A DNA stretch of 64,000 nt from Octopus sinensis. Taxonomy: Eukaryota. Below the pieces are notes generated by a model. The model saw only the letters and a program-made list of their open reading frames with translations, did no database searches and was not told where the DNA came from. A program made the translations under genes and the position numbers. The stretch lies in contig NC_043001.1 of the NCBI RefSeq assembly GCF_006345805.1, positions 86,180,001 to 86,244,000 of the forward strand. The letters are read 5' to 3'. This document shows, piece after piece, positions 1-57,816 of this stretch. Each line of letters opens with the position of its first letter. The first letter of the stretch is position 1.

Positions 1-487
1 TTGCACAGTTAACAATGGTGAATAGTTTACACTACAGTGAACTATTGTAAATATAAAACTGTTCCACAGTAAACATTTTGCTTTTCGTTTCCATTAAACA
101 TTGCACTATCCCACTTTACAGCGTCAGCAAATATTACACTCTACAGGAGTCCATTATCCTATTTCGAAATAAATATTGCTGTGTCCCACATAATGCAATG
201 ATTGTGTCTCAATATAAATATTACACTGTTTTTTTTAATCAAATATTGCAGTATCTTATAGTATCAAAAGACTGAAGAAATTTGTGAAAAACATGCCTTA
301 CAGTAACATTTTGCTGTGAACGTTATATTATTCGAATCTTCACTTTATACCATCCCACTTTATGTCATCGCATTCCATAGTAAAACATGAAAACCCTCTA
401 ATGTAATATTTGTATTGGCTTGGTAATCGTGAAATAACAGGCATTCATTCATGTCAGTTACAATACTATTATTTGGTTTTTGAACAG

Positions 488-651
488 AGCTGGAATATGC
501 TTCAGTTGACTACATCAACAGTAAAGAAGTTTACATCAAATACAACCCAAATCGTGAACAACAAGAAGAAATTTCAAAGGAAAATGGTATTGTCGGCTTG
601 TTCAAAGTGGCATATGACGTGGATCGTGCAAATAATTCAAATTTTATATAT
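488..651 (+). CDS. ITIH: ITIH-like gene, internal exon upstream of VWA (ELEYASVDYINSKEVYIKYNPNREQQ...GLFKVAYDVDRANNSNFIY)
   Basis: Acceptor ttttgaacAG (486-487), donor GTAAGC (652), phase 1 to 0. The F.V.YDV motif is typical of ITIH and the exon splices in frame to AVDGYFVHFF at 3182. Not in the ORF track in this frame. Confidence 0.85.
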
Positions 652-3181: not shown

Positions 3182-3470
3182 GCAGTTGATGGCTACTTTG
3201 TACATTTCTTCACTGCTGATTTCTTAAAACCTCTTCCAAAGCACATAATATTTATACTTGATGTCAGTGGATCAATGTCTGGTACTAAAATTCAACAACT
3301 GAAAGAAGCTATGGAAAATATCCTCGATCAACTTGACCCAAAACTTGATAAATTTCTCATCGGAAAATTCAGCGGTGATGTCAATTGGATGGAGATTAAT
3401 TTTTTACTCGCAAAAGAAGAAAATATAAAACGAGCAAAAACTCATATTAGGAATATTAGCGCCTCGGGAG
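3182..3470 (+). CDS. ITIH: ITIH-like exon, start of VWA domain (AVDGYFVHFF...KHIIFILDVSGSMSGTKIQQLKEAM...ISASG)
   Basis: Acceptor catAG, donor GTAAGT (3471). DGYFVHFF and MIDAS DxSxS (DVSGS); overlaps ORF 3275-3547 in frame. Confidence 0.95.
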
Positions 3471-4761
3471 GTAAGTTGAAGCATATATATATATATATTG
3501 GTTTTCTACTTTTAAAACAATGGACTAAACTTGAATTTTGCTTCTAAATATTATATATTAAGGTAATATAATTACTACTAGGCAAGTTAGCCATAGCATA
3601 TTTAATAGAATTGAATATTAAGCAATGACTAGTATTTTATAGATCTCACAAAGGCATTAAACTGCGATCGTTGAAAGTTTCTGTGAAATATCGCAAATAT
3701 AGGATTCCAGAACAATACATCTCAATTTGAGTGGGTGTGCAATTTCTTAACTGGAGTTTGCTACATAAAGATGAAACGAGGAAAGATTAGGCACCTTGAC
3801 ATCAGTATTGGGATTCTGCAGAAATGTTTACTGTTTCTATTTTTCTTTCTATTTATCGTGGATTTTGTAGAAAAAAAGGCGGTTGACTCAATGCTTGAGT
3901 GAAATGGGGAAGAATACAGGACTGAGAATGAACGCAGAGAAAGCGAAGGCAATTTTTTGGCCAAGAAAGAAAGAAATCCACTTTGACGGTTAAAGATGAA
4001 ACTGTTGACTCAATGAATAGATCAACATACATTCACAGTGTTCCGTACATTGATAGAGGCACTGAAGCTCGTTGCATGTCAAAATTGGTGGAGCCAAAGT
4101 ATTTCAACTGGTAACCAATGTCAAGAGCTGCTATAAAAGTACTCTTCCACTACCAACAACACTATATGCCAGCGAATTGCGTAGGAAATATCATCTTGAC
4201 AACTCCAAAACACAGTAACGGATCGAAAAATATTCTAACCACAAAACAAACTCTAATTCGTAACAGTCGTTCTCTTATCACTAGATATTGATATTCATAA
4301 CAGAAAAACATCACCGTTAGTTTGTGAGGAAGTTATTATTTAAGATACTCTTGATGCATTTTCAACGTTTCTTGCATGAGAAACTTTTGTTTGAATTTGT
4401 GCAAGTTTACTGTTTAAGTAAATTGCTGCCTGTCTCACATATATCATAGGTATACAAAAATAAGGATACGATCAATGTCAGAAGTTGAAGAGTCTACATT
4501 AAGCTAAACAATGTTAAAACCAACTGACGCTGTATTATGATGTTGCCTTATCGAGGCCCAAACCAGAAACACATGCTCCGTTTCTATATATGTTCCTTTT
4601 ACCGTTAAAGTTAGCTTATTTTCATATCAAGTAAACTATGTTTAACATTTAAATATAATATTTGCACCTCTCACACACTTTTTGTCCCACTGTTTTTAAT
4701 CCTTTGTTTCTAGAGTTACTGTATATGTATATTATATATTTTAATTTTGCTGGTATTCCAG

Positions 4762-5471
4762 GTACAAATATAAACGCTGCTCTCCTTGAAAGTATAGACA
4801 AACATAAATCCGCTGCTGAAAGAGTTTTACCCACCAAAACTAAAAATATCATCATATTTCTCACTGATGGTCATCCAACAGAAGAGGAAAGCTCTACAGA
4901 AAATATCAAGAGAAATGTAAGAGAGGCCAACAAAGAGATTTCATTATTTACTCTTGGTTTCGGAGAAGATTGTGACCATAAATTTCTACGTGAGATTGCC
5001 ATGGAAAATGGAGGCTTTAGTAGGAAGATCTACGTTGACTCTGACAGTAGACTTCAAATTGAAAATTTTTATAAAGAAATATCTAACATTTTATTAAAGG
5101 ATATTACGTTTGTTTACTTAGATAGTGCTGTTAATACTAGTTCTACGTCATTTAGCAGCTACTTCAAAGGATCAGAATTAGTTGTTTCAGGTGTTTTGAA
5201 GGATAAAACCCAATCGACCATGCTACTAAAGGTAAACAAGACAGACAATACGGGACGAAATACTGATATATTAAAATTGAATATCAATCTGAGTGGAATT
5301 GGAGATGACTTTACTCTATACGATGATCTTCCTGAAAATCCAGAATTGACAAGTGTTCAGTCATTTTCTGAAATTACTGAAAAGAGTTATGCTTACCTCA
5401 CCCTGAAACAACTTCTCAAAGAAGAGAGAACACGCCATGTGAAAAAGAAAATTCTTAATCTGGCACTTAAG
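4762..5471 (+). CDS. ITIH: ITIH-like exon, rest of VWA domain (GTNINAALL...IFLTDGHPT...LFTLGFGEDCD...SELVVSG...YAYLTLKQLL...LNLALK)
   Basis: Acceptor ttccAG (4760-4761), donor GTGAGT (5472). GTNI, LTDG, LGFG, GSELVVSG and YAYLTLKQLL are ITIH hallmark motifs; ORF 4662-5516. Confidence 0.95.
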
Positions 5472-6254
5472 GTGAGTAAAAAATTAATGAAGATTAATAG
5501 CCATTTTATTGCCTAAATTTTAAAGATAACAGCTTTATTTGTTTCAGTTACCAATATAACTAATTAATTCTGGCCTTGTGCCAAAATTTGAAACCAATAT
5601 AAATAACTACATTTATTCACTTAAACGGAGCTTTCACGCACAAGTATCTTTTAAAATGTTCTGTAAGATGATATATCACAAAGTGTCATTCCATGTTTGT
5701 ATGAAAATTATGTTATACAGACTAGTATTTTTATCTAAGACTATTTCACATGCTTATAATAATTTGATTCTGCCTGGCTAGCTTTCGCACAGATACATAA
5801 TTGCTTTGTTTACCGATTCCTGTATCGGAGCAAGTATTTTCGGCTTAACATAGAACGTCTGGGACTGCCGTCACTGAGGAAACCAAATCAGGTTGAAACA
5901 CCATGATGAAGACTATACTGAAATTCTGAGCGAAGCCCTGTGTTTATAACATGCTAGCCATTGAAATATGTTTTTCCACAACATATGTTAAAACTACAGA
6001 TGGTCCACGTTTGTAAATACAAGTTTAATCCAAAGTTGTTTAAAGTGCGTAAATTAAATTAACAAATTAATTATTTTAAAATCGTACACAATTTATAAAT
6101 TACCATTGAGATAATTTCTATTAAAATTTGTATTAAGTCAAATCGAAGAAATTTAAATAGATGTAATTCTTCTTCACAACATAAATAACATAATTTCCTT
6201 TAAAAATGTTTGCCATATCATGTTGATTATGATATCTAGTTTTCAGATATGATA

Positions 6255-6820: not shown

Positions 6821-7226
6821 TGCATCTTTTAACTTGTTTCTTTGTTATGACGGACTCATTGTATCTGTAATTTATTCCATCATGAATTCTTTATCATTTA
6901 TTCCTTACATAATGACGTCTTGCTTACAGAAATATTTCTTAGGCATATTTCCAACTTTTTCCGCAAAATATTTTGTATTAAAAACCTCTTGGAAAAGTCG
7001 ACCTTTTGAACAAAGAGGCAAAATTAAATGTTTTTATTCCTTTAGTCTAGCAATCTTCAATCTTAGCCATTCAAAGTTCCTGAAGCTTATTCATTACCAT
7101 CAAAAATATACCAACAATGAAAGCATGAAATATAAAGTTGATGGAGTTTTAATCGTCATTGTTATGTATTGTAACATTGTTTCATATTTCTGTGGTACTA
7201 AAATGTAATATTCTTCCTTGTGACAG

Positions 7227-7302
7227 TATAATTTTGTAACACCATTAACATCAATGGTTGTCACCAAATCTACAGTTAAAGAGAAACATTTTGGCCAAAA
7301 CG
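7227..7302 (+). CDS. ITIH: ITIH-like exon YNFVTPLTSMVVTKSTVKEKHFGQN
   Basis: Acceptor gtgacAG, donor GTAAGT (7303). FVTPLTSMVV motif is conserved in ITIH/VIT-VWA proteins; phase 0 to 1. Confidence 0.93.
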
Positions 7303-11485: not shown

Positions 11486-11512
11486 ATGATGACTCATCAG
11501 GAAGACGAGGAG
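11486..11512 (+). CDS. 27-nt microexon (D)DDSSGRRG
   Basis: Pyrimidine tract + tgcAG, donor GTGAGT; phase 1/1, open. Confidence 0.75.
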
Positions 11513-13721: not shown

Positions 13722-13733
13722 GAGCGCACAGAA
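13722..13733 (+). CDS. 12-nt microexon (G)AHR
   Basis: Long pyrimidine tract + ttcAG, donor GTAAGT; multiple of 3. Confidence 0.7.
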
Positions 13734-20528: not shown

Positions 20529-21310
20529 ACTTCGAGTATATATAAGATCTTTCTTGCCATCTCCAAAAATTTACGAAACAGCATGCCCAAATAGACCACG
20601 TCTTTTTCTTAACCATAGTAATGGAATAAGCCATTCAATAGCTTCAGTATCACGCGAGGCATCCATTAAAGTGACTCCATGTCCTCATTACTTCTCTGCA
20701 TGGCACTAGTCCCACTTTCAAACCAATTGAACAACATCGGAATGCCTACAAAAGTCTTAGGATAATAAACCATTTCTTTTTGCATGGACAATCTGAAACC
20801 GTTTGCAAGAGATAGACGGGCTGCGAATAAGTGTTAAAGAGTTTAACAATGATATCTGGATGGATTTTGGCCTTGAGAAGTTTGCTAAAGCAAATTTGGA
20901 TTGGACAGAAGCTCAGACAAACAACATCCATTAAATTAGACACTAGCATCAACTTGGCCCACACGAAATGCATAAACACGTAGGTATAATGCAGAGTTGG
21001 CATCAATTTTTCTTGCGAATCTACAAGCTTCCTTGACAACAGAATATAATTGTTTTCTTGTTCGTACACAAGTCGCAGCATATAGACCTCTGCACTGCAT
21101 AAATACATGTTCATTCCTATAGTGGAGTTTCCATAGCATAACAATCCTTTTCCTTCAGTACTTTTATGTTGGTAAAAACCGTCAACGTCTGCCTAAAGGC
21201 AGTGAATGTTAGAGATCAATCATTTTCTTGTCTTCTTGCCCTTGCGTTGGAGTCCCAGAGGCGAGCAATTAATGATATCGAACTGTACTCGACAACTGGA
21301 TTTGACTACG
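19830..21310 (+). mobile_element. Highly decayed RT fragment, R4/Dong-like LINE
   Basis: IDYTKAFDSVPHRWILEVL (ORF 20404) and a degenerate MDNLKPFA; paralogous to 30150-31410. Confidence 0.65.
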
Positions 21311-21575
21311 TATGTTCTAATATGTTTAAACAGTAATATACTTTTTTTTAAACAGTAATATACTTTTTAAACAGTAATATACTCTTTTGAAAGCGTTTTA
21401 TCGAACGTTTTAAGTATATTAAGAAATTTAATAGTAATTCACTTTAGCAGATAATGACTTTATTTGGAGGAAAATATTAAATAATTTCCTTTGAGCGACT
21501 ATAGATAAACCAAAAAATGTATATCTTAATAGCTTCAAAACTTATATATACATCATTCTTCTCTATTTTTTTCAG

Positions 21576-21590
21576 TTCGTCCTTCACATG
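21576..21590 (+). CDS. 15-nt microexon, array copy 1, (F)RPSH
   Basis: tttttttcAG TTCGTCCTTCACATG GTATGT. Confidence 0.75.
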
Positions 21591-21877
21591 GTATGTAACT
21601 ATTTAAATATTTCCAATTGCATTTTCCAGTTTAAAACAGTCATTTTCTAGTTTAAAACATTAAGTTGAGGTCTTAAGTCACATTATTGAATTCATAAGAT
21701 GCTGTGTATATATTTTCAGATTGATTTGATTGTAATTCACTTTAGCAGTTAATAATTTTATTTGGAGGAAAATATTAAATTATTTCCTTTGAACGACTAT
21801 AGATAAACCAAAAAAATGTATATCATAATAGCTTCAGAATTTATATATACATCATTCTTCTCTATTTTCTTTTTCAG

Positions 21878-21892
21878 TTCGTCCTTCACAAG
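21878..21892 (+). CDS. 15-nt microexon, array copy 2, (V)RPSQ
   Basis: tttttcAG TTCGTCCTTCACAAG GTATGT. Confidence 0.75.
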
Positions 21893-22168
21893 GTATGTAA
21901 CTATTTCCAATTGCATTTTCCAGTTTAAAACAGTCATTTTCTAGTTTAAAACATTAATTTGAAGTCTTAATTCACATTATTGAATTCATAAGATACTGTG
22001 TATATACTTTCAGATTGATTTGATAGTAATTCACTTTAGCAGTTAATAATTTTATTTGGAGGAAAATATTAAATTATTTCCTTTGAATGAATATAGATAA
22101 ACCAAAAAAATGTATATCTTAATAGCTTCAAAACTTATATATACATCATTCTTCTCTATTTTTTTCAG

Positions 22169-22183
22169 TTCGTCCTTCACATG
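22169..22183 (+). CDS. 15-nt microexon, array copy 3, (V)RPSH
   Basis: tttttcAG TTCGTCCTTCACATG GTATGT. Confidence 0.75.
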
Positions 22184-22470
22184 GTATGTAACTATTTAAA
22201 TATTTCCAATTGCATTTTCCAGTTTAAAACAGTCATTTTCTAGTTTAAAACATTAAGTTGAGGTCTTAAGTCACATTATTGAATTCATAAGATGCTGTGT
22301 ATATATTTTCAGATTGATTTGATTGTAATTCACTTTAGCAGTTAATAATTTTATTTGGAGGAAAATATTAAATTATTTCCTTTGAACGACTATAGATAAA
22401 CCAAAAAAATGTATATCATAATAGCTTCAGAATTTATATATACATCATTCTTCTCTATTTTCTTTTTCAG

Positions 22471-22485
22471 TTCGTCCTTCACAAG
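22471..22485 (+). CDS. 15-nt microexon, array copy 4, (V)RPSQ
   Basis: tttttcAG TTCGTCCTTCACAAG GTATGT. Confidence 0.75.
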
Positions 22486-22766
22486 GTATGTAACTATTTC
22501 CAATTGCATTTTCCAGTTTAAAACAGTCATTTTCTAGTTTAAAACATTAATTTGAAGTCTTAATTCACATTATTGAATTCATAAGATACTGTGTATATAC
22601 TTTCAGATTGATTTGATAGTAATTCACTTTAGCAGTTAATAATTTTATTTGGAGGAAAATATTAAATTATTTCCTTTGAATGAATATAGATAAACCAAAA
22701 AAATGTATATCATAATAGCTTCAGAATTTATATGTACATCATTCTTCTCTATTTTTTTGGTTTCAG

Positions 22767-22781
22767 TTCGTCCTTCAAAGG
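22767..22781 (+). CDS. 15-nt microexon, array copy 5, (V)RPSK
   Basis: tttcAG TTCGTCCTTCAAAGG GTATGT. Confidence 0.72.
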
Positions 22782-24199
22782 GTATGTAACTATTTATATA
22801 TTTCCAATGGATTTTTCTCGTTTAAATCAGTTATTTTCGAGTTTAAAACATTAATTTTAGATTTTAATTCATATTATTGAATTCATAAGATGCTGTGTAT
22901 ATATTTTCAGATTGATTTTATTATATTAACAATCTGAAAATATGGATAACTAATAATATTACATAAACACAAAAGATCATACACGTACAGGGTGTTCGGA
23001 CTAAATTTAACAGTTTGGATACAAGGAAGAGAAAATACAATATTCCATACTGAATTAGAAGGATTTTTAAATAACTAAACTTATCAAGATGGCTAGCAAA
23101 TGGGTGTTTACTGAAAGGAGCCGTCCTCAGCTCCCATCTAAGCCTCACAACGGCTCCGGAACCTGGTTCATGCGTTCCTCACTGTGTTCCTGAGAAGATT
23201 TTTGAACACCTTCGTCTTGACACCCAGCCTGGCCTCTGTGTTGAAAGCAGAGTAGATAGTTATCTTTCTCACCTGCTTCCATACACGGTAATCCATTTGA
23301 TTAAAATCGGAGAATCAGGATGCCCGAAACTGGGGTTGGTGTAGCCATAAGAATTCTCCGACAGCCATTTCTGATTCTTTCCAGTACTATAACAAAGAGC
23401 TAAATCCTGCAGCTACACACATGGCCTTCACGCAGCAGCCCTATACAGTCAGGGGTTGACTGCTTCACATAGTCGTCTGAACTGAGATTAAGGGGTCTAT
23501 TTAAAATTGTAGCAATCAACCCATGCGTGCGAACGCAGTCGAAAGTGACCATTCATGAATGTCACAATTTTGTAGACTCCGATGCAACTGTCCAGTCATG
23601 TTGTCGGCATGTAGACAACCAATCTGAATCATCGTTTTACAGGGATTTCTTTTCCAATATTCATATGTTTTCTAATCCTCCATGTCGGAAATATTTTTCT
23701 CAACAACAAGTTTAATCTTTATGCCCTCGGATCTGTTCAATTTGACTCACAGATTTTTTAAAAAATGTTTAACTAATCAGTTTCAAACTCCGTAAACTGG
23801 TGGAATGTCTCACGCAGAACACGATTTACTTTGAACATTTTTGACAAAAGTTGGTATTTTAGACGTTATTTCGTGTTATGATTGTATTTGGGTAATTTCA
23901 ACCAATCTACGACGTGTTGTTCATTTTTCTACAAGTCAAAAATTTTTTCAAGTACGTTGCTTTTTTTTGTGATTTCTTCACGTCTGGAAGTATCGATGTT
24001 CAAATTCCTTCTGAAAGTTTCATACTGGAAGAGAAAGTAATTTCGGCAAGTCCATGAAATGAATCATTGTTTTCTTCATTTGGTTCCAAAATTATAAAAT
24101 GGAAATTTTGTTGTGAGAATAATTCGTTCTCAACACATCCATTCGACAAAATAATGTCATCAAATATATGGATATAAATACGAATGGATGAGTTTATAA

Positions 24200-27808: not shown

Positions 27809-28155
27809 TATATATATAAATAATTAATAATATCAGGGTAATAAAGATTTTAGAAATTTTTACTCACTGTGGCCTAGCGTGTAGAAAATTCAGTCAATAG
27901 ACTATATATTAATCATAAAAATACAGTGTACATTTACACACATAAGAAGTATCCGTCATAGGATTCCTTTCACGCTAGATAGAGTAGCTAAAGTTCAAAC
28001 CACTATTAGGGGTAAAAACTCGAAGGCAATGAAAAATAAAAACATTTACCATCTGTCTCCTGGACCATGGTTTCTGACATTTTTTAGCAAATAAAATAAT
28101 TTGCTAGGTGAAGTCTTCATCAACAGGTACGCCTAGATCATGTTTAATATATATA

Positions 28156-28699
<544 letters not shown>

Positions 28700-29047: not shown

Positions 29048-29523
29048 GTAGGTAAAAATATTTTATATATATATATCTTTATAGAAATAGCATGAAAAAT
29101 ATATAAACAAAAATTCGTACAAATTTAATTTTAACCTCAATTATAGATAGTTCTAGAAACATTGTTTAATTTTCTTCAAGAGTACAATAACTGCTGACTC
29201 TAAATTCTGCTGCAAGTTAGCTTTTTCAGTTTCATTATTGCAATATTTGTAACATCAGTTTTAAAGTAGAAATCAGCCAGAATTAACTGCTTACGTTCTA
29301 ATAAGTTTAAACTGTCATACCCTTTTATTAAAAGCACAATTTTTTTAATCAAAATTTTTAAGTATGTTAAAGAAATAATTACAATTCCCTTTCTCATATT
29401 GTAATTTCTATTTGAAAGAAAATGTTTAAAATATTTCCCTTCAGAAACTATAAATAAACCAGAGAAATATATGCTTTAATAACCACGTGATTTATATGTA
29501 TATTATTCTTTATTTTTTTTTAG

Positions 29524-29553
29524 TTCTCGATCCATCCAGACTTCCTTCACGCG
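29524..29553 (+). CDS. 30-nt microexon, type B, (V)LDPSRLPSR
   Basis: Poly-T AG ... GTATGTAACT; downstream intron homologous to that of the 15-nt array exons. Confidence 0.75.
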
Positions 29554-30149
29554 GTATGTAACTATTTAAATTATTTCCAATTGAATTTCCTAGTTTAAAA
29601 TAGTTGTTTTTCTAGATTTTAATCTACATTAGCAACCCAATATGACACTATAGCTATATGTTCATATTGTTGATATTGTAGTAACAATCTGAAAATTTAA
29701 ATAATCTTATAATATTACATACACACAAGAAATCATACACGCACAGGATGTTCAGGTTAAATTTGACAGTTTGTGTACAAAGGAAACTTTATAGCCCATC
29801 CAAAATTAAACACATTTCAAGAAAGGAAATAATATCAACTAGATTATTGCAAGCAGATAAGAATTTACTGAAAGTAGACTCACTAAGCTCCCACCTCAGC
29901 CTCAAGATATCTCCGGAACCTACCTGGCGCGTACATTCCTCTCAGTAAACCCGTCAACATTTTCGAACCCCTCCATGAAGACGAAGGAGCTTAACGGGTT
30001 ACGAATGTAACAAGCTGATCTTGAAGATCAGTTGACATGAAAAAAAAACAGTCATCGTTTGTTCGGACATCCTCTATAAATTTGAGTCTGTAAGTTTGAA
30101 TGTGTAGTTATGTGTGTGTGTGTACGTGTATGTGTGTATGTGTAATATT

Positions 30150-32695: not shown

Positions 32696-32731
32696 ATTCT
32701 TTATTCATATACATGCCATTTATTTTTTCAG

Positions 32732-32746
32732 GTCTTTCTGTACGCA
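32732..32746 (+). pseudogene. Probable dead 15-nt microexon (G)LSVR
   Basis: Acceptor tttttcAG intact, but the donor reads ATATATAACT where paralogues have GTATGTAACT; downstream intron sequence is homologous. Confidence 0.55.
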
Positions 32747-32823
32747 ATATATAACTATTTAAATATTTCCAATTCCATTTTCTAGTTTAAAATACACACT
32801 TTGAGATTTTCATCTACATTAGC

Positions 32824-32889
<66 letters not shown>

Positions 32890-33873
32890 CTATAACTATA
32901 TTTTCATATTGCTAATATTGTATTAACCATCAAAAAATATAAATACTTAATAAAATCTCGTTTTATCCCTTCAAACTCAGCATTAAACTTGCATTTATGT
33001 CTCCATACCTTTCTCTAGAACTCTTCCACTTCCTGAAGCTTAAGTACCTCTTTTATTCATACCTTTGTTATCCCAATTTCTGTACACGCCTACTTTTCTT
33101 CGGGATCAGCTTGGTGTATTTGTGAACAGTCAATCTCCATAGTTTTCATGGGCAAGACAATGAAAGTATTCGAGGATATTGTAAGGAACACGGAAGGAAA
33201 TGCTTGCGCCGGGTTCCGAGGCTGTCTTGAGGCTGAGGGAGGTTGCTTTCAGTAAACTCTTATCTGCTGGCGATAATCTATTTGATATTCTTCGCTTTTT
33301 CAAAATGCGTTCAATTTTTGATGCTGCATTGTGTTTTCTTTTCCTAGCACACAAACGCTCAAATTTAGCCTGAACACACTTTACATGTATAATGCTTTGT
33401 GTGTATGTAATATTATCAAGTATTTATATTTTCAGATGGTTATATTAAAATTTCAAAAATACTTGTAGTTTGGTGCGTCTGTTATACAATGGTTCATGTT
33501 ATTAGAGGTCAATAATTGTCTTGCCTTTCTCTCCGTGTAAGACTCAAATTGATGCACTGGTCAACCAGAATTGACTACGTACTTCCTAATATGTTTAAAC
33601 AGCGATGTACATTTCTTAATGCACAACTTTTGTTATCGACGAACTAATCATGATAAAAAAAAACTACATTTTTCTTATTTGAACCTTTCCATTCCACGTT
33701 TCCGGTGAAGCGCTATGGTCAACACGCTAAAAATTCTTTTTTACTAAGCATGAAACAAATACATTCTTTGAACACGTCTTCCTGATGTGTATTAACGTGT
33801 GTGTGTGTGTGCGTGTATCTGTGCGTTTGTGTGTGTATATGTACGTATGTATATTTGTGTATGTGTATGTGTG

Positions 33874-39126: not shown

Positions 39127-39156
39127 TTCACCGTCTATCAATACTTGCTTCACGCG
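39127..39156 (+). CDS. 30-nt microexon, type B, (V)HRLSILASR
   Basis: ttttAG ... GTATGTAACT; paralogous to 29524. Confidence 0.72.
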
Positions 39157-39574
39157 GTATGTAACTATTTAAATTATTTCCAATTGAATTTCCCAGTTTA
39201 AAATAGTTGCTCTTGTAGATTTTAATCTACATTAGCGACCCAATATGGCACTATAGCTATATGTTCATACTGTAGTAACAATCTTAAAATTTAAATAATC
39301 TATAATATTACATACACACAAGAAATCATACAAGCACAGTGTGTTCAGGTTAAATTTGATAGTTTGTGTACAAAAAGACTCAACTGCCCATCCCAAATTA
39401 AACACATGTCAAAAAAGGAAATAATATCAACTAGATTATTGCTAGCAATATTCATAACATCCATGTTAATGTAAAAATCAACCACAATTAACTAATAAGG
39501 TTCGCATAAGTTTAAATTGTCATGTCCTGTTTTAAAAAGCACAATTTTTTTATCAAACGTCTTAAATATGTTTG

Positions 39575-41146: not shown

Positions 41147-41176
41147 TTCTCGATACATACGGACTTCCTTCACGCC
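41147..41176 (+). CDS. 30-nt microexon, type B, (V)LDTYGLPSR
   Basis: ttttAG ... C|GTATGTAACT; paralogous to 29524. Confidence 0.7.
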
Positions 41177-42432: not shown

Positions 42433-42900
42433 GGAGACGGCGAGCTGGTAGAAACGTTAACACGCCGGGCGAAATGCGTAGCCGTATTTCGTCTGCCGTT
42501 ACGTTCTGAATTCAAATTCCGCCGAGGTCGCCTTTTCCTTTCATCCTTTCGGAGTCCATTAAATAAGTACCAGTTACGCACTGGGGTCGATATAATCGAC
42601 TTAATCCGTTTGTCTGTCCTTGTTTATCCTCTCTGTGTTTAGTCCCTTTTGAGTAGTAAAGAAATAGGTATATAACTATTTAAATATTCCCAATTGCATT
42701 TTCTAGTTTAAAATAGATACGTTGAGATGTTTTTTTTCTACTCTAGGCACAAGGCCCGAAATGTTGGGAAATAGGGCCAGTCAATTAGATCGACCCAGTA
42801 CGCAACTGGTACTTAATTTATCGATCCCGAAAGGATGAAAGGCAAAGACAACCTCGGCGAAATTTGAACTCAGAACTTAATTGCTTAGCAGTGTTTCGTC
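42433..42900. mobile_element. SINE S2 (+, 42433-42667) and SINE S2 (-, about 42730-42900)
   Basis: S2 core motifs in opposite orientations. Confidence 0.8.
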
Positions 42901-44129
42901 TGTATGAATATTGCTTACACTCAAAACATCTTACATGTCCAGGCTGTATTTGACATTTGTGAACAAGGAAAAAAAATCAGTAACGCATTCAAAATCAAAC
43001 GCATTTAAAAAAAAATAAAGAATATCATCTAGATTATGGCTAGCAAATAAGAGTTTACTGAAAGCAGTTGCCCTCAACTCCCACCTGAGCTTCAAGACGG
43101 TTCCGGAACCTGGTACATGCATTCCTTTTGTGTCCCTGACAATTTTCTCGAGCACCTCCATCGCCTTGGCCATGAAAACGAAGGAGGTTGATTGTTCACA
43201 AAAGTATCAAGCTGACAAGGAAAATTAGACATAGAAAATCGTGAATTTTTGTCCGAACGTCGAGTACGCGCATGTTTGTGTGTGCGTGTATGTGTTTGAG
43301 TATGTGTGCAATACTACTACCACTACTACTCGGGGCTAATGCAGTTTCGCAACTCTCCTGTACTCCTACTAGTTGTCGGAGATTACGAATATGCAAAAAA
43401 AAAAATTTTAATTTTACCCCCGTCCCCACCACCCATTTAATTTTTTGATTTTGTTTACTTTAAAGAGAGCATGGCGAACTGACGAACAATTGCAAATCGA
43501 AATTAAATATACAAACATTAAAGTGAAAAGAAATTGCGTTTTACTTGTGTTTGCCTTAAATGATCGTAAATAATAATTTAATGTAAATTAAATATACTCC
43601 ATTTTATGAGAAACAAACATTAATTTTTAATAATTAATGTTATAAAGTTTAATAAGGGGCTGAAATTTCACCCCTTAACCAATTTAAAATTTTGAACTTT
43701 TTCATCCATTTTTCTATTTGCTTGTCTATGTATCCCTGGCCGTATATTTATAAAATATATTTGTCAATTAAATATGGCGATCCTATAGAAGACGGTGTTA
43801 CGAAAACGTTGTTTCTTGCATATTCGGAATCTCCGTCATCTAAATTATAGGGAAGAAAAATTTCGAAAAAGTACAAAATTTTAAGGGGGTAGGGAACGAT
43901 AGTAGGGGTGGGGAGTGGTGGTAGAGGTGGGGAGGGGTAGTTGGGGTGGAGAGTGGTGGTAGGGGTGGGAAGTGATGGTAACGGTGAGAAGGGTGGTAGG
44001 GGTGGGGAGTTGGGTTAAATTTTTTTTTTGCATATTCGTAATCACCGACATTTAAAACGTAGGGATCCGGAAAAAAATTTTCAAAACAAGGAGGGGTGCG
44101 AAACTGCATCAGCCCCGAAGAATCCTTTC

Positions 44130-45060: not shown

Positions 45061-45219
45061 GAAAACTTACAACCACAGGAAAACCAACAACCACAGGAAA
45101 ACCTACAACCACAAGAAAACCTACAACCACAGGAAAACCTACAACCACAAGAAAACCTACAACCACAGGAAAACCTACAACCACAGGAAAACCGCTACCA
45201 ATTTTTCTTCATGCTCCTG
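45061..45219 (+). CDS. 159-nt Thr-rich exon KLTTT(G/R KPTTT)x6 GKPLPIFLHAP
   Basis: Acceptor cttccAG (45059-45060), donor GTAAGA (45220); 53 codons, phase 1/1; 18-bp internal repeat; ORF 45018-45299. Confidence 0.85.
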
Positions 45220-46156: not shown

Positions 46157-46180
46157 CCATTGCCTTAAAACCATTAAATT
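46157..46180 (+). CDS. 24-nt microexon (A)IALKPLN
   Basis: Long pyrimidine tract + ttttAG, donor GTAAGT; phase 1/1. Confidence 0.72.
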
Positions 46181-46729
46181 GTAAGTTAGACTTGTGTTTC
46201 ACTGATAATACTATCTGCAGAAACCAAACAGGAATCATGTTTTTGAACGATAAATATGCAAGTAAGTGATTCAATATTGTTTTACATTTATCTTAATATA
46301 ATTTGCTAAAAATGTTTTATTTTTTCCACAACAGTATGAAATATGTCCTTCATTGTTTTCGGAACATTTACTCAGGTTTCTTTATTGTTCTGTATCATTT
46401 AATTTTTAACGGTAATAGCTTCTATGTTCACCTTACCTTTAACTTTTTGATTATTTCAATCATTACACTACAGTCATGCTAGAACACAGCTTTGAAGAAG
46501 TTAGACGAACGGATTATCCCTAGTACTTACATTTTTTTGTAAAGTCTCGTACCTATTCTATTGATCGATTTTGCCGAACTGCTTTTTACAGAGACATAAA
46601 TAGACCAACACCGATTGTCAAGCGGTGGTAAAAGACAAACACAACAGAAAGACACACAGACATGTGTGTGTGTGTGTGTGTGGTGTGTGTGTGTGTGTGG
46701 TGTGTGTGTGTGTGTGTGTGTGTGCGTGC

Positions 46730-46780
<51 letters not shown>

Positions 46781-46955
46781 CAGACTTTGTCACACTCTGA
46801 TGACAGCGAACAAGCAGAAACTTAGAAGACACTGTCAAACTTTCCCGTTCAGTGTGTGTATGTGTGTGTGGTCTTCTAATTTCAAAGTAGAAAATTAATA
46901 AAATATTATATACGTAAATTCTTTAATATATTAGGAAAATAACTTTTGTATTTTA

Positions 46956-47221
46956 TGACGTATATTTGCCATTGAAATATGGCTAACCCCTAAGGGTGGA
47001 TGCTACTGTAGTTTGTAGCCCCGGAGGCCACCGCCTCAGCTGGCTATAGACACACATTCTGTGCCCTATCAGTATTGCAATGGTGACTTCCTTTTGCAAA
47101 TACTGATAGGGCACAGAAAGTGTGTATATAGCCAGCTGGAGGCGGTGGCCTCCTGGGGCTACAAACTACAGTAGCATCCACTCTTAGGGGTTAGCCATAT
47201 TTCAATGGCAAATATACGTCA
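46956..47221. mobile_element. Foldback MITE, 266 bp, ~125-bp arms, ~13-nt loop
   Basis: tgacgtatatttgccattgaaatatggctaacccctaag... versus ...cttaggggttagccatatttcaatggcaaatatacgtca; one-armed relative at 61785-61915. Confidence 0.88.
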
Positions 47222-47754
47222 CGATGTATTGTAGCTACTGTTTATAACTCGCTTTGAGATTTATTATTTTTGTATTTTATTTTATATTAATGTAATAAAT
47301 TTATATATTGTAAAATTCATATTATATATACATGTGTGTATGTGCGTATGCGTTTTCGTGTCATATTTTAATGTTAATTTTCTATATTGCCTTTATTCTA
47401 CAGAAATATCTATTTATGGTCATGTGAAGAGGATATCACGCACTAATTGTTTAGAAACTCTTGATAAAGTATATATAAAAATGAGAAATAAAGTATCTGA
47501 ATTTACTCCCGAGTATTTCAAAATAAAAGGAAGAACTTATAATACCACCAGAAGGAAAAACGTTCGCATCACTCTGAAACGTTTCATCAGATTAAGAATA
47601 AACTTTCAGAAAACTATCAACTCTGAAAAACTTATTTCCTTGCATTTGGATCTTTTGAGTAAATTTATTAAACCCAAAGGAATTTTGAGTAAGTAACAGA
47701 TTTTTTACTAAATAAATTTTGGGGCTGTATTAGAATAGATTTTATTAGCTTGTA

Positions 47755-48050
47755 AGTTTGTTCCTTCTCGAGCCATGCCTGGCTCATAAGGGCCGGTTTC
47801 CCGGTTTCCTTGGCGTATAGGTTCCTCACCTGGACGGGGCACCGGCCGTCGCACATGAGCTGCAAGAAGAAAGAGTGAGAGAAAGTTTTGGCGAAAGTGT
47901 CAGCAGAAGTTCGCCATTACCTTCTGCTGGAGCCGCGTGGAGCTTAGGTGTTCCGCTCATAAACACACACATCCCCCGGTCTGAGATTCCAACCCGCGAT
48001 CCCTCGACCGCGAGTCCGCTGCTCTAAACACTAGGCTATGTGCCTCCACT
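47755..48050 (-). mobile_element. tRNA-derived SINE S3
   Basis: Minus-strand head ggaggcacatagcctagtgtttagagcagcggactcgcggtcgagggatcgcgggttggaatctc. Confidence 0.7.
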
Positions 48051-48418
48051 ATTAGCATGTAAACAGAAGAGAAATAAAGAAATAACTGTATGCTTGATTA
48101 ATGGCTAACAGTTTCTTGATATATGTTAACAGTTTTACACTGCTAATACAGTATTTTAAAGTATTATATTAATTCAATCGGTATATGAAATGTCACTTGT
48201 GTGGAGCAACACACAACTACTTTTTCGTTGTCCATAGAATATTGATTTACCGACTATTTGCGACTTCTACTATTGCTCCAATAAACTTCTGTATAAATAT
48301 TCTTGTAGACCGAATTCCATTTGAAATTATAAGATGTCACAAAACAAGTTAATCTTTAAAAAATAAAGATGCATTTTCAAGCTATTTTTACCAAAGTAAC
48401 TAAATTTTGAATAATATT

Positions 48419-48631
48419 CGAGGGTCTTTCTGAAAAGTTCCTAGCTTTAGGAGTATGCAAAAGTTCTTGTTGGAGGCCTAGGCTTCCGAGTTCTTTTACA
48501 GTGCTTAGGAAAACTAAAAGGCCGCGGCAATAAATGTATGGATTTGAGAGGAGAGTATGTTGATTAAAATCATAATTAACTTCTCTGTATTTTCTTTTAC
48601 CCAAAACCAGAAACTTTTTAGCACCTCCTCG
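48419..48631. mobile_element. Mariner-type MITE (~213 bp)
   Basis: Degenerate TIRs cgagggtctttctgaaaagttcct / agaaactttttagcacctcctcg. Confidence 0.5.
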
Positions 48632-48827
48632 CACAGGAAATGGGTATTTGGTATTTTATATAAATACGTTTTATCTATTTATACATTTATTTATACATTT
48701 ATTTAAACATTTATATATAAACAACTAGTATGTTTTCTGTCTTGAATGCATCTTAAAAAGAATGTTAACGAAGATCCACTGTCTAATGACGATGCATTAT
48801 TAATTTATTAATGCCTTTCTATTTCAG

Positions 48828-48961
48828 GTGACTATGCAAAGGCCTTCCAATGTACTGAAAAGGCACCGAACCAGATGGTATTGTCTCACAAAGCAGCTAC
48901 TTTTAATAAAGTAAATTACAAGACATCAAGGGGAAGTTTATCCTCTTGTTTTACAATGTGA
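48828..48961 (+). CDS. Exon (C)DYAKAFQCTEKAPNQMVLSHKAATFNKVNYKTSRGSLSSCFTM*; terminal, or spliced at GTGAGA (48958)
   Basis: ctttctatttcAG acceptor in phase 1; open for 43 codons to TGA 48959-48961. The 3' end is ambiguous. Confidence 0.55.

Positions 48962-57274: not shown

Positions 57275-57816
<542 letters not shown>

Follow-up and report, generated by a model that had tools for sequence, protein, structure and literature searches.

Does a protein repeat grow by the copying of whole exons together with their introns, or by slippage within a single exon? The question is raised by a 64,000-nucleotide (nt) stretch of the Octopus sinensis genome (NC_043001.1; hereafter the window, whose coordinates are used throughout), in which five tandem units of ~297 bp, each with a 15-nt exon between splice signals, lie within a gene for a protein annotated in relatives as similar to inter-alpha-trypsin inhibitor heavy chains (ITIH). 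We think it likely that the array arose when one microexon cassette was amplified locally, and very recently, in the region coding for the protein's linker, and that its exons are spliced in. The anatomy of the array, its host gene, its phase fit, its higher-order repeat, and a cassette-type homology to annotated octopod microexons can be read from the sequences themselves. From the annotated models of the orthologous genes we infer that the five array exons enter the mRNA, and we infer further that copy number varies between individuals.

A single array, spanning 21426-22918, was returned by Tandem Repeats Finder (score 2453, 91% matches, 5.0 copies of period 294); every unit in it has a 15-nt exon flanked by the tail of one intron and the head of the next (Table 1; U1 to U5). 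With ^ marking a splice junction, a motif search for CAG^TTCGTCCTTCA(CAT/CAA/CAT/CAA/AAG)G^GTATGT, a string that can also be written CAG^TTCGTCCTTCANNNG^GTATGT and whose exon is in shorthand TTCGTCCTTCAC(A/T)..., found exactly five occurrences, all on the + strand. Each unit follows the pattern cag^15 nt^gtatgtaac and has an acceptor, an exon, a donor, and symmetric phase: a long pyrimidine tract and CAG precede the exon, G^GTATGTAAC follows it, and 276-287 nt of intron separate one exon from the next. When the first two bases of each exon close a split codon, the exons read (V)RPSH, RPSQ, RPSH, RPSQ, and RPSK. The first-pass annotation of this DNA had described the same five-unit anatomy, with exon-to-exon spacings of 302, 291, 302, and 296 bp, and both analyses reproduce it, confirming the array as a real observation. 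As for its label "minisatellite," the units (291-302 bp) exceed the classical minisatellite unit size of ~10-100 bp, and the variable copy number that also marks minisatellites and VNTRs is a prediction here.

Alternating units resemble each other more than adjacent units do: identity is 100% between U2 and U4 (291/291 aligned bases), 97.3% between U1 and U3, and 94-96% between neighbors, with U5 standing apart at 90-93% identity to the other units. Between the dimers U1U2 (593 bp) and U3U4 (598 bp), all differences fall in the first 87 columns (8 substitutions, 2 indels) and in a tail of 5 bp; the remaining ~507 bp are identical. The proposal that a 593-bp dimer was itself duplicated is therefore upheld by these identities. 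U3 has variants in common with U5, and the array contains at least three distinct unit types. Perfect tandem duplicates are typical sites of assembly error, and given the exact match of U2 to U4 and of most of U1 to U3, one could suppose that the cassette is real while its copy number, or the perfect 507-bp duplication, stems from a misjoined haplotype or an expanded repeat. We regard such an artefact as quite unlikely: the substitutions and indels separate the dimers, U5 is 7-10% diverged, and the surrounding sequence is contiguous. At a minimum, the three unit types and the eight substitutions between the dimers speak for a genuine multicopy array.

The gene that holds the array encodes a secreted octopod VIT-VWA protein. 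Open frames at 3182-3544 and 4659-5513 encode its VWA domain, and an exhaustive HMMER search with the VWA exon retrieved Octopus bimaculoides "inter-alpha-trypsin inhibitor heavy chain H4-like" isoforms X1-X5 (XP_014784808-812; 823-834 amino acids [aa]), Argonauta hians GAB1598744.1 (876 aa), and one O. vulgaris protein. tblastn with full-length relatives matched the + strand at 487-666, 3182-3469, 4764-5471, and 7224-7292 and, after a gap, at 46159-46260, ~47403-47687, and 48821-48958, the last ending at a stop codon; we refined the exon coordinates in Table 1 from these ranges by splice-site reading. The residues left unmatched coincide exactly with the linker that separates FVTPLTS... from ...IKPLNC. 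Since the array lies on the coding strand between 7302 and 45061, it falls inside the ~38-kb interval (7303-45060) that codes for this linker. The window and the O. bimaculoides ITIH H4-like protein are 65-68% identical, and the two loci are collinear, 3' flank included, with ~78% nucleotide identity in exons, which argues for orthology of the two genes. Another sequenced relative, the source of Logan run SRR11869391, has 78% nucleotide identity to the window at the VWA exon.

Relatives of the window VWA exon carry PF00092/PF13768, and the conserved ITIH motif FVTPLTSMVVTK is represented in the window by YNFVTPLTSMVVTK, within exon 7227-7302. The O. bimaculoides orthologue has a VIT domain (PF08487, E = 9e-25); the window begins at about residue 200, and the VIT exons lie upstream. 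A search of the + strand of the window for the ITI_HC_C motifs DPHF, CWF, and HGLLGQ found no real instance, and no Pfam family matched the 174-aa C-terminal region, the O. bimaculoides protein showing only VIT and VWA. This Cys-containing region of ~174 aa (46157-48961, + strand) is conserved among octopods despite the lack of a Pfam match. As the ITI_HC_C domain is absent, "ITIH-like" (VIT-VWA) is a better name than canonical ITIH, and the annotations "ITIH H3/H4-like" denote a VIT-VWA protein with a different tail. The encoded protein consists of a VIT domain, a VWA domain, a linker rich in Pro, Ser, Thr, and His, and the Cys-containing C-terminal region.

Because all three frames of the 15-mers are open, the reading frame is not fixable from the array alone; it is given by the host gene. 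Exon 7227-7302 has the 3' boundary ...AAC G^gtaagt, a phase-1 end whose final base is G. Exon 45061-45219 is phase 1 at both ends and also finishes with G. As both bounding exons are phase 1 and end with G, they select the VRPSH/Q/K frame (G + TT = Val), and the annotation's choice of RPSH, RPSQ, and RPSK was right. Conceptual splicing of exon 7227-7302 to all eight intact cassettes (the five array units and three older ones described below) and the four downstream exons yields one 307-aa frame, open as far as the natural stop. With all cassettes in phase 1-1, any subset of them stays in frame.

Could the splice-like motifs be coincidental, the array being a noncoding tandem repeat or a transposon fragment? 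This AT-rich genome has many T-runs and local repeats, the three frames are open, and one founder motif would have been copied five times; we accordingly treat the five array copies as one copied event, not five independent observations. Outside the cassettes, 13 acceptor/donor pairs as strict as these and of microexon type (9-33 nt, multiple of 3, phase-1 open) occur in 128 kb (both strands), and first-order Markov simulations gave ~2 such pairs per 64 kb; the chance expectation is only ~0.01-0.03 microexon-like pairs per 294-bp unit. The array is also situated in the linker-coding gap, on the strand of the gene and in matching phase, its copies are confined to the + strand at 21-43 kb rather than dispersed as a transposon would be, and 15-nt phase-1 exons of the type x-R-P-S/P-x are annotated in two other octopods. 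We consider coincidence highly improbable. Rfam at gathering thresholds detected no RNA family in the window.

The linker of O. bimaculoides is likewise assembled from microexons. Its five isoforms are identical outside the linker and differ by PHFSDP (18 nt), DHLFQQ (18 nt), and HPNRV (15 nt), with junction changes A/P, D/A, and H/P, as expected for phase-1 exons. Its linker exons (CM046605.1) measure 27, 24, 18, 15, 18, and 15 nt, all phase 1, and the two-exon [18+15]-nt module is duplicated, with flanks 70-76% identical. In A. hians, 15-nt exons (TRPPS, VRPPV, FNPPV, VRPPV, and FMLTT; donor G^gtatgtaaac, in FNPPV gtaagtaaac) alternate with 33-nt exons (VSHGLFGLQRP and VSHRNFDQQHR, both repeated, then GFHHRFDPTTT; donor gtaagtaacc). 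A 2.55-kb A. hians module comprising 33-, 15-, and 33-nt microexons has a tandem duplicate, offset by 3549 bp and 97.9% identical; this duplication is independent and recent, and lies in the same linker. The duplicated module (BAAFZT010000005.1, 18232-24307) gives rise to an exact 32-aa repeat in the protein.

These linkers resemble that of the window in their position between the FVTPLTS and IKPLNC exons, in their symmetric phase-1 microexons of 15-33 nt with G^GTATGTA-type donors, and in related peptides (VRPPV, TRPPS, VAPSN, and HPNRV). An alignment of the window 15-nt cassette with an A. hians 15-nt cassette spans pyrimidine tract, exon, and donor, pairing the exons TTCGTCCTTCACAAG and TCAGGCCTCCAGTAG, that is, (V)RPSQ and (V)RPPV; it scored 38, compared with 21.6 ± 2.8 for shuffles (maximum of 32 in 200). 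Other cassette-by-cassette local alignments to the two species were weak. When the linker introns were compared with those of O. bimaculoides at the nucleotide level, transposon pieces alone were recovered; intron sequence in the linker shows no alignment from one species to another. In both species the duplicated modules, of two or three exons each, lie 1-5 kb apart (offsets of 3549 and ~4000-4900 bp), unlike the window, where one exon and an intron of ~280 nt recur in five head-to-tail copies. No array of period ≤500 bp occurs in the O. bimaculoides or A. hians linker, and the compact head-to-tail form is particular to the window's lineage. In all three octopod lineages, then, the linker seems to be encoded by the same kind of microexon, with cassettes duplicated separately in each.

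How might the array have formed? One 15-nt linker cassette would have been duplicated into a dimer of an H-type and a Q-type unit; that dimer would then have been duplicated very recently, with U5 an older neighboring unit. Since each unit runs from the 3' end of one intron through an exon into the start of the following intron, unequal exchange moves whole exons, and unequal crossing-over or replication slippage between adjoining intron copies could add or remove them. Linker exons all start in phase 1 and nearly all end with G, and cassette exons start with TT, so that a GTT (Val) codon would form at each junction. Between zero and five cassettes could be spliced in, with the frame kept whatever number is skipped; if all five were included, the linker would gain (VRPSH)(VRPSQ)(VRPSH)(VRPSQ)(VRPSK), up to 25 residues. 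The earlier annotation had opposed such intron-scale copying to slippage within exons. Its first half is favored by the phase-1 microexon strings and duplicated cassettes in the orthologues, but its "rather than" fails: the last linker exon (45061-45219) itself contains seven head-to-tail 18-nt repeats (GKPTTT/RKPTTT) within one exon, so the linker also grows by intraexon slippage. The orthologous O. bimaculoides exon (APSNRVPNTAPARELPPLPRSP, ending ...PRSP + G^gtaagaaaacatg) is without the GKPTTT repeat.

Older copies of the unit are present farther along the linker interval. Diverged copies were found on the + strand only, at 29.4, 32.7, 39.1, 41.1, and 42.7 kb; the rest of the 64-kb window has none. 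Every cassette copy shares the strand of the gene, and the copies are restricted to 21-43 kb. Three of the diverged copies (B29, B39, and B41) are ~70% identical to the array units, follow the pattern tag^30 nt^gtatgtaac, and retain the AG, the GTATGT, an exact exon length of 30 nt, and the phase-1 frame. The 15-nt exon equals TTC plus the final 12 nt of the 30-nt exon, an in-frame length difference of 15 nt. The best-conserved part across cassette copies, decayed ones included, is not the exon but the ~55 nt after the donor, with the consensus gtatgtaactatttaaat(t)atttccaattg(c/a)attt(t)cc(a/t)agtttaaaa. This intron head is 90-92% identical to 39148-39207 and 42667-42716, compared with ~70% for the remainder of the unit; stretches that match it after cassette donors include 29554-29605, 39157-39207, and 42667-42716, and the head persists even at a copy without an exon. 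This element could enhance microexon splicing, or gene conversion could have homogenized it.

Several observations weigh against exons that are spliced in, beyond the three open frames. The cassette homology rests on one short alignment and a common architecture. The two copies that have decayed (32.7 and 42.7 kb) show that retention is not universal, and at 0-9% divergence the five units are too young for their intact splice sites to be informative on selection. Exons are not better conserved than flanking introns (for example, B29/B39: exon 23/30, flanks 130/146); exon identity was below flank identity in 12 of 14 pairs across the three species, although no pair tested individually was significant. 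Weak exon conservation extends to annotated exons of the other two species, so the pattern in the window is not evidence against coding. Searches of protein sequences retrieved no transcript or protein of O. sinensis or a close relative: in word-indexed searches, the VWA exon matched fragmentary open reading frames (ORFs) only, unit ORFs and spliced peptides matched nothing at E ≤ 10, and the conceptual 307-aa C-terminal half matched only low-complexity PT-rich sequences.

From the searches that retrieved no transcript, the youth of the copies, the dispensability that decayed cassettes imply, and the indifferent exon conservation, a case can be made that the array is a set of silent pseudo-exons: amplified copies of a linker cassette that are skipped always or nearly so, without effect on the protein. 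We judge this unlikely, though it deserves to be taken seriously. The splice signals (G^GTATGTAA donor, long pyrimidine tract plus CAG) match those of annotated A. hians 15-nt exons, the 276-287-nt introns are close to the ~262-nt intron between annotated A. hians microexons, phase and junction codons fit perfectly, and the 30-nt copies have kept their sites, length, and frame over ~12-30% divergence. Recent amplification of a linker cassette whose exons are spliced in remains our preferred reading. A bolder extension of it, which we hold to be rather doubtful, is that the linker is a fast-evolving "exon variable-number tandem repeat (VNTR)," in which individuals would differ in exon number through tandem-repeat-like recombination of the array, the ~55-nt element would guide the splicing of subsets, and exons would be under diversifying selection. 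Diversifying selection is proposed because exons diverge at least as fast as introns in the three species. If true, the exon VNTR would be a variant-generating system like that of the schistosome micro-exon genes (MEGs; see below) in an extracellular protein of a mollusc.

The growth of protein repeats through the copying of exons together with introns is well known as a mechanism, and the array is an unusually compact and recent form of it. Repeat number is set by exon-plus-intron duplication in the 54-bp exons of collagens, in spider flagelliform silk (Flag), and in LPA kringle IV-2, and the introns of Flag are as alike as its exons, or more so. Their units and exons are much larger than those of the window, and we know of no 15-nt exon in a ~300-bp unit among collagen, Flag, and LPA. 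What is unusual here is a 15-nt exon in each ~297-bp satellite-like unit, the higher-order structure, and the presence of several stages within one gene. A limited literature check found no description of a cephalopod precedent.

The P exons of avian fast skeletal troponin T (TNNT3) are ~15 nt each and encode pentapeptides. Up to seven of them are arranged in tandem and alternatively spliced, with a repeating His/Glu motif (PMC7581897). Like the window, TNNT3 has tandem small exons that encode a short repeating motif (containing His in TNNT3) in a variable region; it differs in being an unrelated gene of another clade, with a His/Glu-rich metal-binding motif. Schistosome MEGs contain strings of symmetric microexons whose lengths are multiples of 3, mostly 15 bp, produce variants by skipping, and evolve fast (10.1101/2023.06.21.545858; PMC4350168). 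They share such strings with the window linker, but in MEGs, a schistosome-specific family, microexons make up nearly the whole of a small secreted protein, whereas in the window they are limited to the linker of a large VIT-VWA protein and form near-identical tandem copies. The octopod protein, with >800 aa and large VWA exons (710 and 289 nt), does not belong to the MEGs and is MEG-like only within its linker.

Other features of the interval are less directly tied to the array. Ahead of it, two + strand stretches at 11486-11512 (27 nt, DDDSSGRRG) and 13722-13733 (12 nt) are microexon candidates with strong sites, phase-1 frames, and lengths that are multiples of 3; the former starts with AT, as does the first A. 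hians linker exon (DKETVKGT). We rejected a piece ending GACTAC^GTATGT at 21311 as an upstream exon: it belongs to a nine-copy noncoding element, lacks a conserved GT, and is interrupted by a stop in phase 1. That repeated noncoding element (...accagaattgactacgtacgtcctaatatgtttaaacag), at 21284-21348 (+ strand), accompanies cassette modules and has copies near 29280, 31384, 33553, 34200, 39450, 39831, 40679, and 42320 (+ strand); its tail at 21325-21392 is a 19-21-bp tandem repeat of 3.3 copies.

The linker interval is roughly threefold longer here than in O. bimaculoides (~38 kb versus ~13 kb). The + strand from 28.9 to 43.2 kb is a patchwork of kilobase-scale local duplications with 73-92% identity, among them 29082-29452/40441-40832, 29485-29855/39091-39447, and 33497-33832/39759-40101. 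A repeat of ~300 bp, probably a small transposable element, begins directly after the array, B29, and B39 (22915-23211, 29711-30018, and 42907-43215 on the + strand; inverted at 33106-33461 on the − strand). At 35.2-37.9 kb (+ strand), a linker intron contains broken reverse transcriptase ORFs resembling those of long interspersed elements (Pfam RVT_1, E = 1.6e-14), followed by a long AAG/poly-Lys microsatellite at ~37.0-37.2 kb. Repeats resembling short interspersed elements occur at 7.5-8.2 kb, 28147-28576 (+ strand), and 57296-57704 (− strand), those at 28.1 and 57.7 kb being 84% identical, and (TA)n and (TATG)n microsatellites are found across the whole window.

Table 1. Exons of the host gene and cassette features in the O. 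sinensis window (^, splice junction)
Feature	Position	Strand	Sequence or reading	Basis
Host exon	487..651	+	~residues 200-254 of O. bimaculoides protein	tblastn, splice sites
Host exon	3182..3470	+	VWA domain start	tblastn, splice sites
Host exon	4762..5471	+	Remaining VWA domain up to ...LALK	tblastn, splice sites
Host exon, final before linker	7227..7302	+	YNFVTPLTSMVVTKSTVKEKHFGQN; phase-1 end with G	tblastn, sequence reading
Tandem array, U1-U5	21426..22918	+	Five ~297-bp units	Tandem Repeats Finder, unit/dimer identities, alignment
Microexon U1	21576..21590	+	TTCGTCCTTCACATG; (V)RPSH; phase 1-1; acceptor ttcttctctatttttttcag, donor G^gtatgtaac	Sequence reading
Intron head	21591..21645	+	gtatgtaactatttaaatatttccaattgcattttccagtttaaaacag; in all units	Identity comparison, alignment
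Microexon U2	21878..21892	+	TTCGTCCTTCACAAG; (V)RPSQ	Sequence reading
Microexon U3	22169..22183	+	(V)RPSH; 15-nt exon identical to U1	Sequence reading
Microexon U4	22471..22485	+	(V)RPSQ; whole unit identical to U2	Sequence reading
Microexon U5	22767..22781	+	TTCGTCCTTCAAAGG; (V)RPSK; most diverged unit	Sequence reading
Older single-copy cassette B29	29524..29553	+	tag^30 nt^gtatgtaac; (V)LDPSRLPSR; phase 1-1	Alignment
Decayed cassette	32723..32792	+	Acceptor retained; donor GTATGT changed to ATATAT	Alignment
Older cassette B39	39127..39156	+	30-nt exon; (V)HRLSILASR	Alignment
Older cassette B41	41147..41176	+	30-nt exon; (V)LDTYGLPSR; last base C, not G	Alignment
Cassette remnant	42667..42716	+	Conserved intron head alone	Alignment
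Last linker exon	45061..45219	+	Phase 1 at both ends; 3' boundary ...FLHAP + G^gtaagaaaacatg	Orthology to O. bimaculoides exon APSNRV...PRSP
Host exon, opens C-terminal region	46157..46261	+	(A)IALKPLNCKLDLCFTDNTICRNQ...	tblastn
Host exon	47404..47688	+	KISIYGHVKRISRTNCLETL...KPKGIL	tblastn, splice reading
Last coding exon	48828..48961	+	...SRGSLSSCFTM, then stop codon	tblastn, splice reading

The locus carries a warning for annotation: 15-nt exons in a tandem repeat are usually masked or missed, in which case the predicted protein would be up to 25 residues short, and the three 30-nt exons could account for up to 30 more missed residues. If exon number is polymorphic, it would provide an easily genotyped protein-length variant in a cephalopod. 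The array offers a datable snapshot of a repetitive protein segment growing by exon-plus-intron copying: one gene preserves a single unit, a dimer, a duplicated dimer, diverged and decayed copies, and an adjacent intraexon repeat, and two other octopod lineages have duplicated cassettes independently in this linker.

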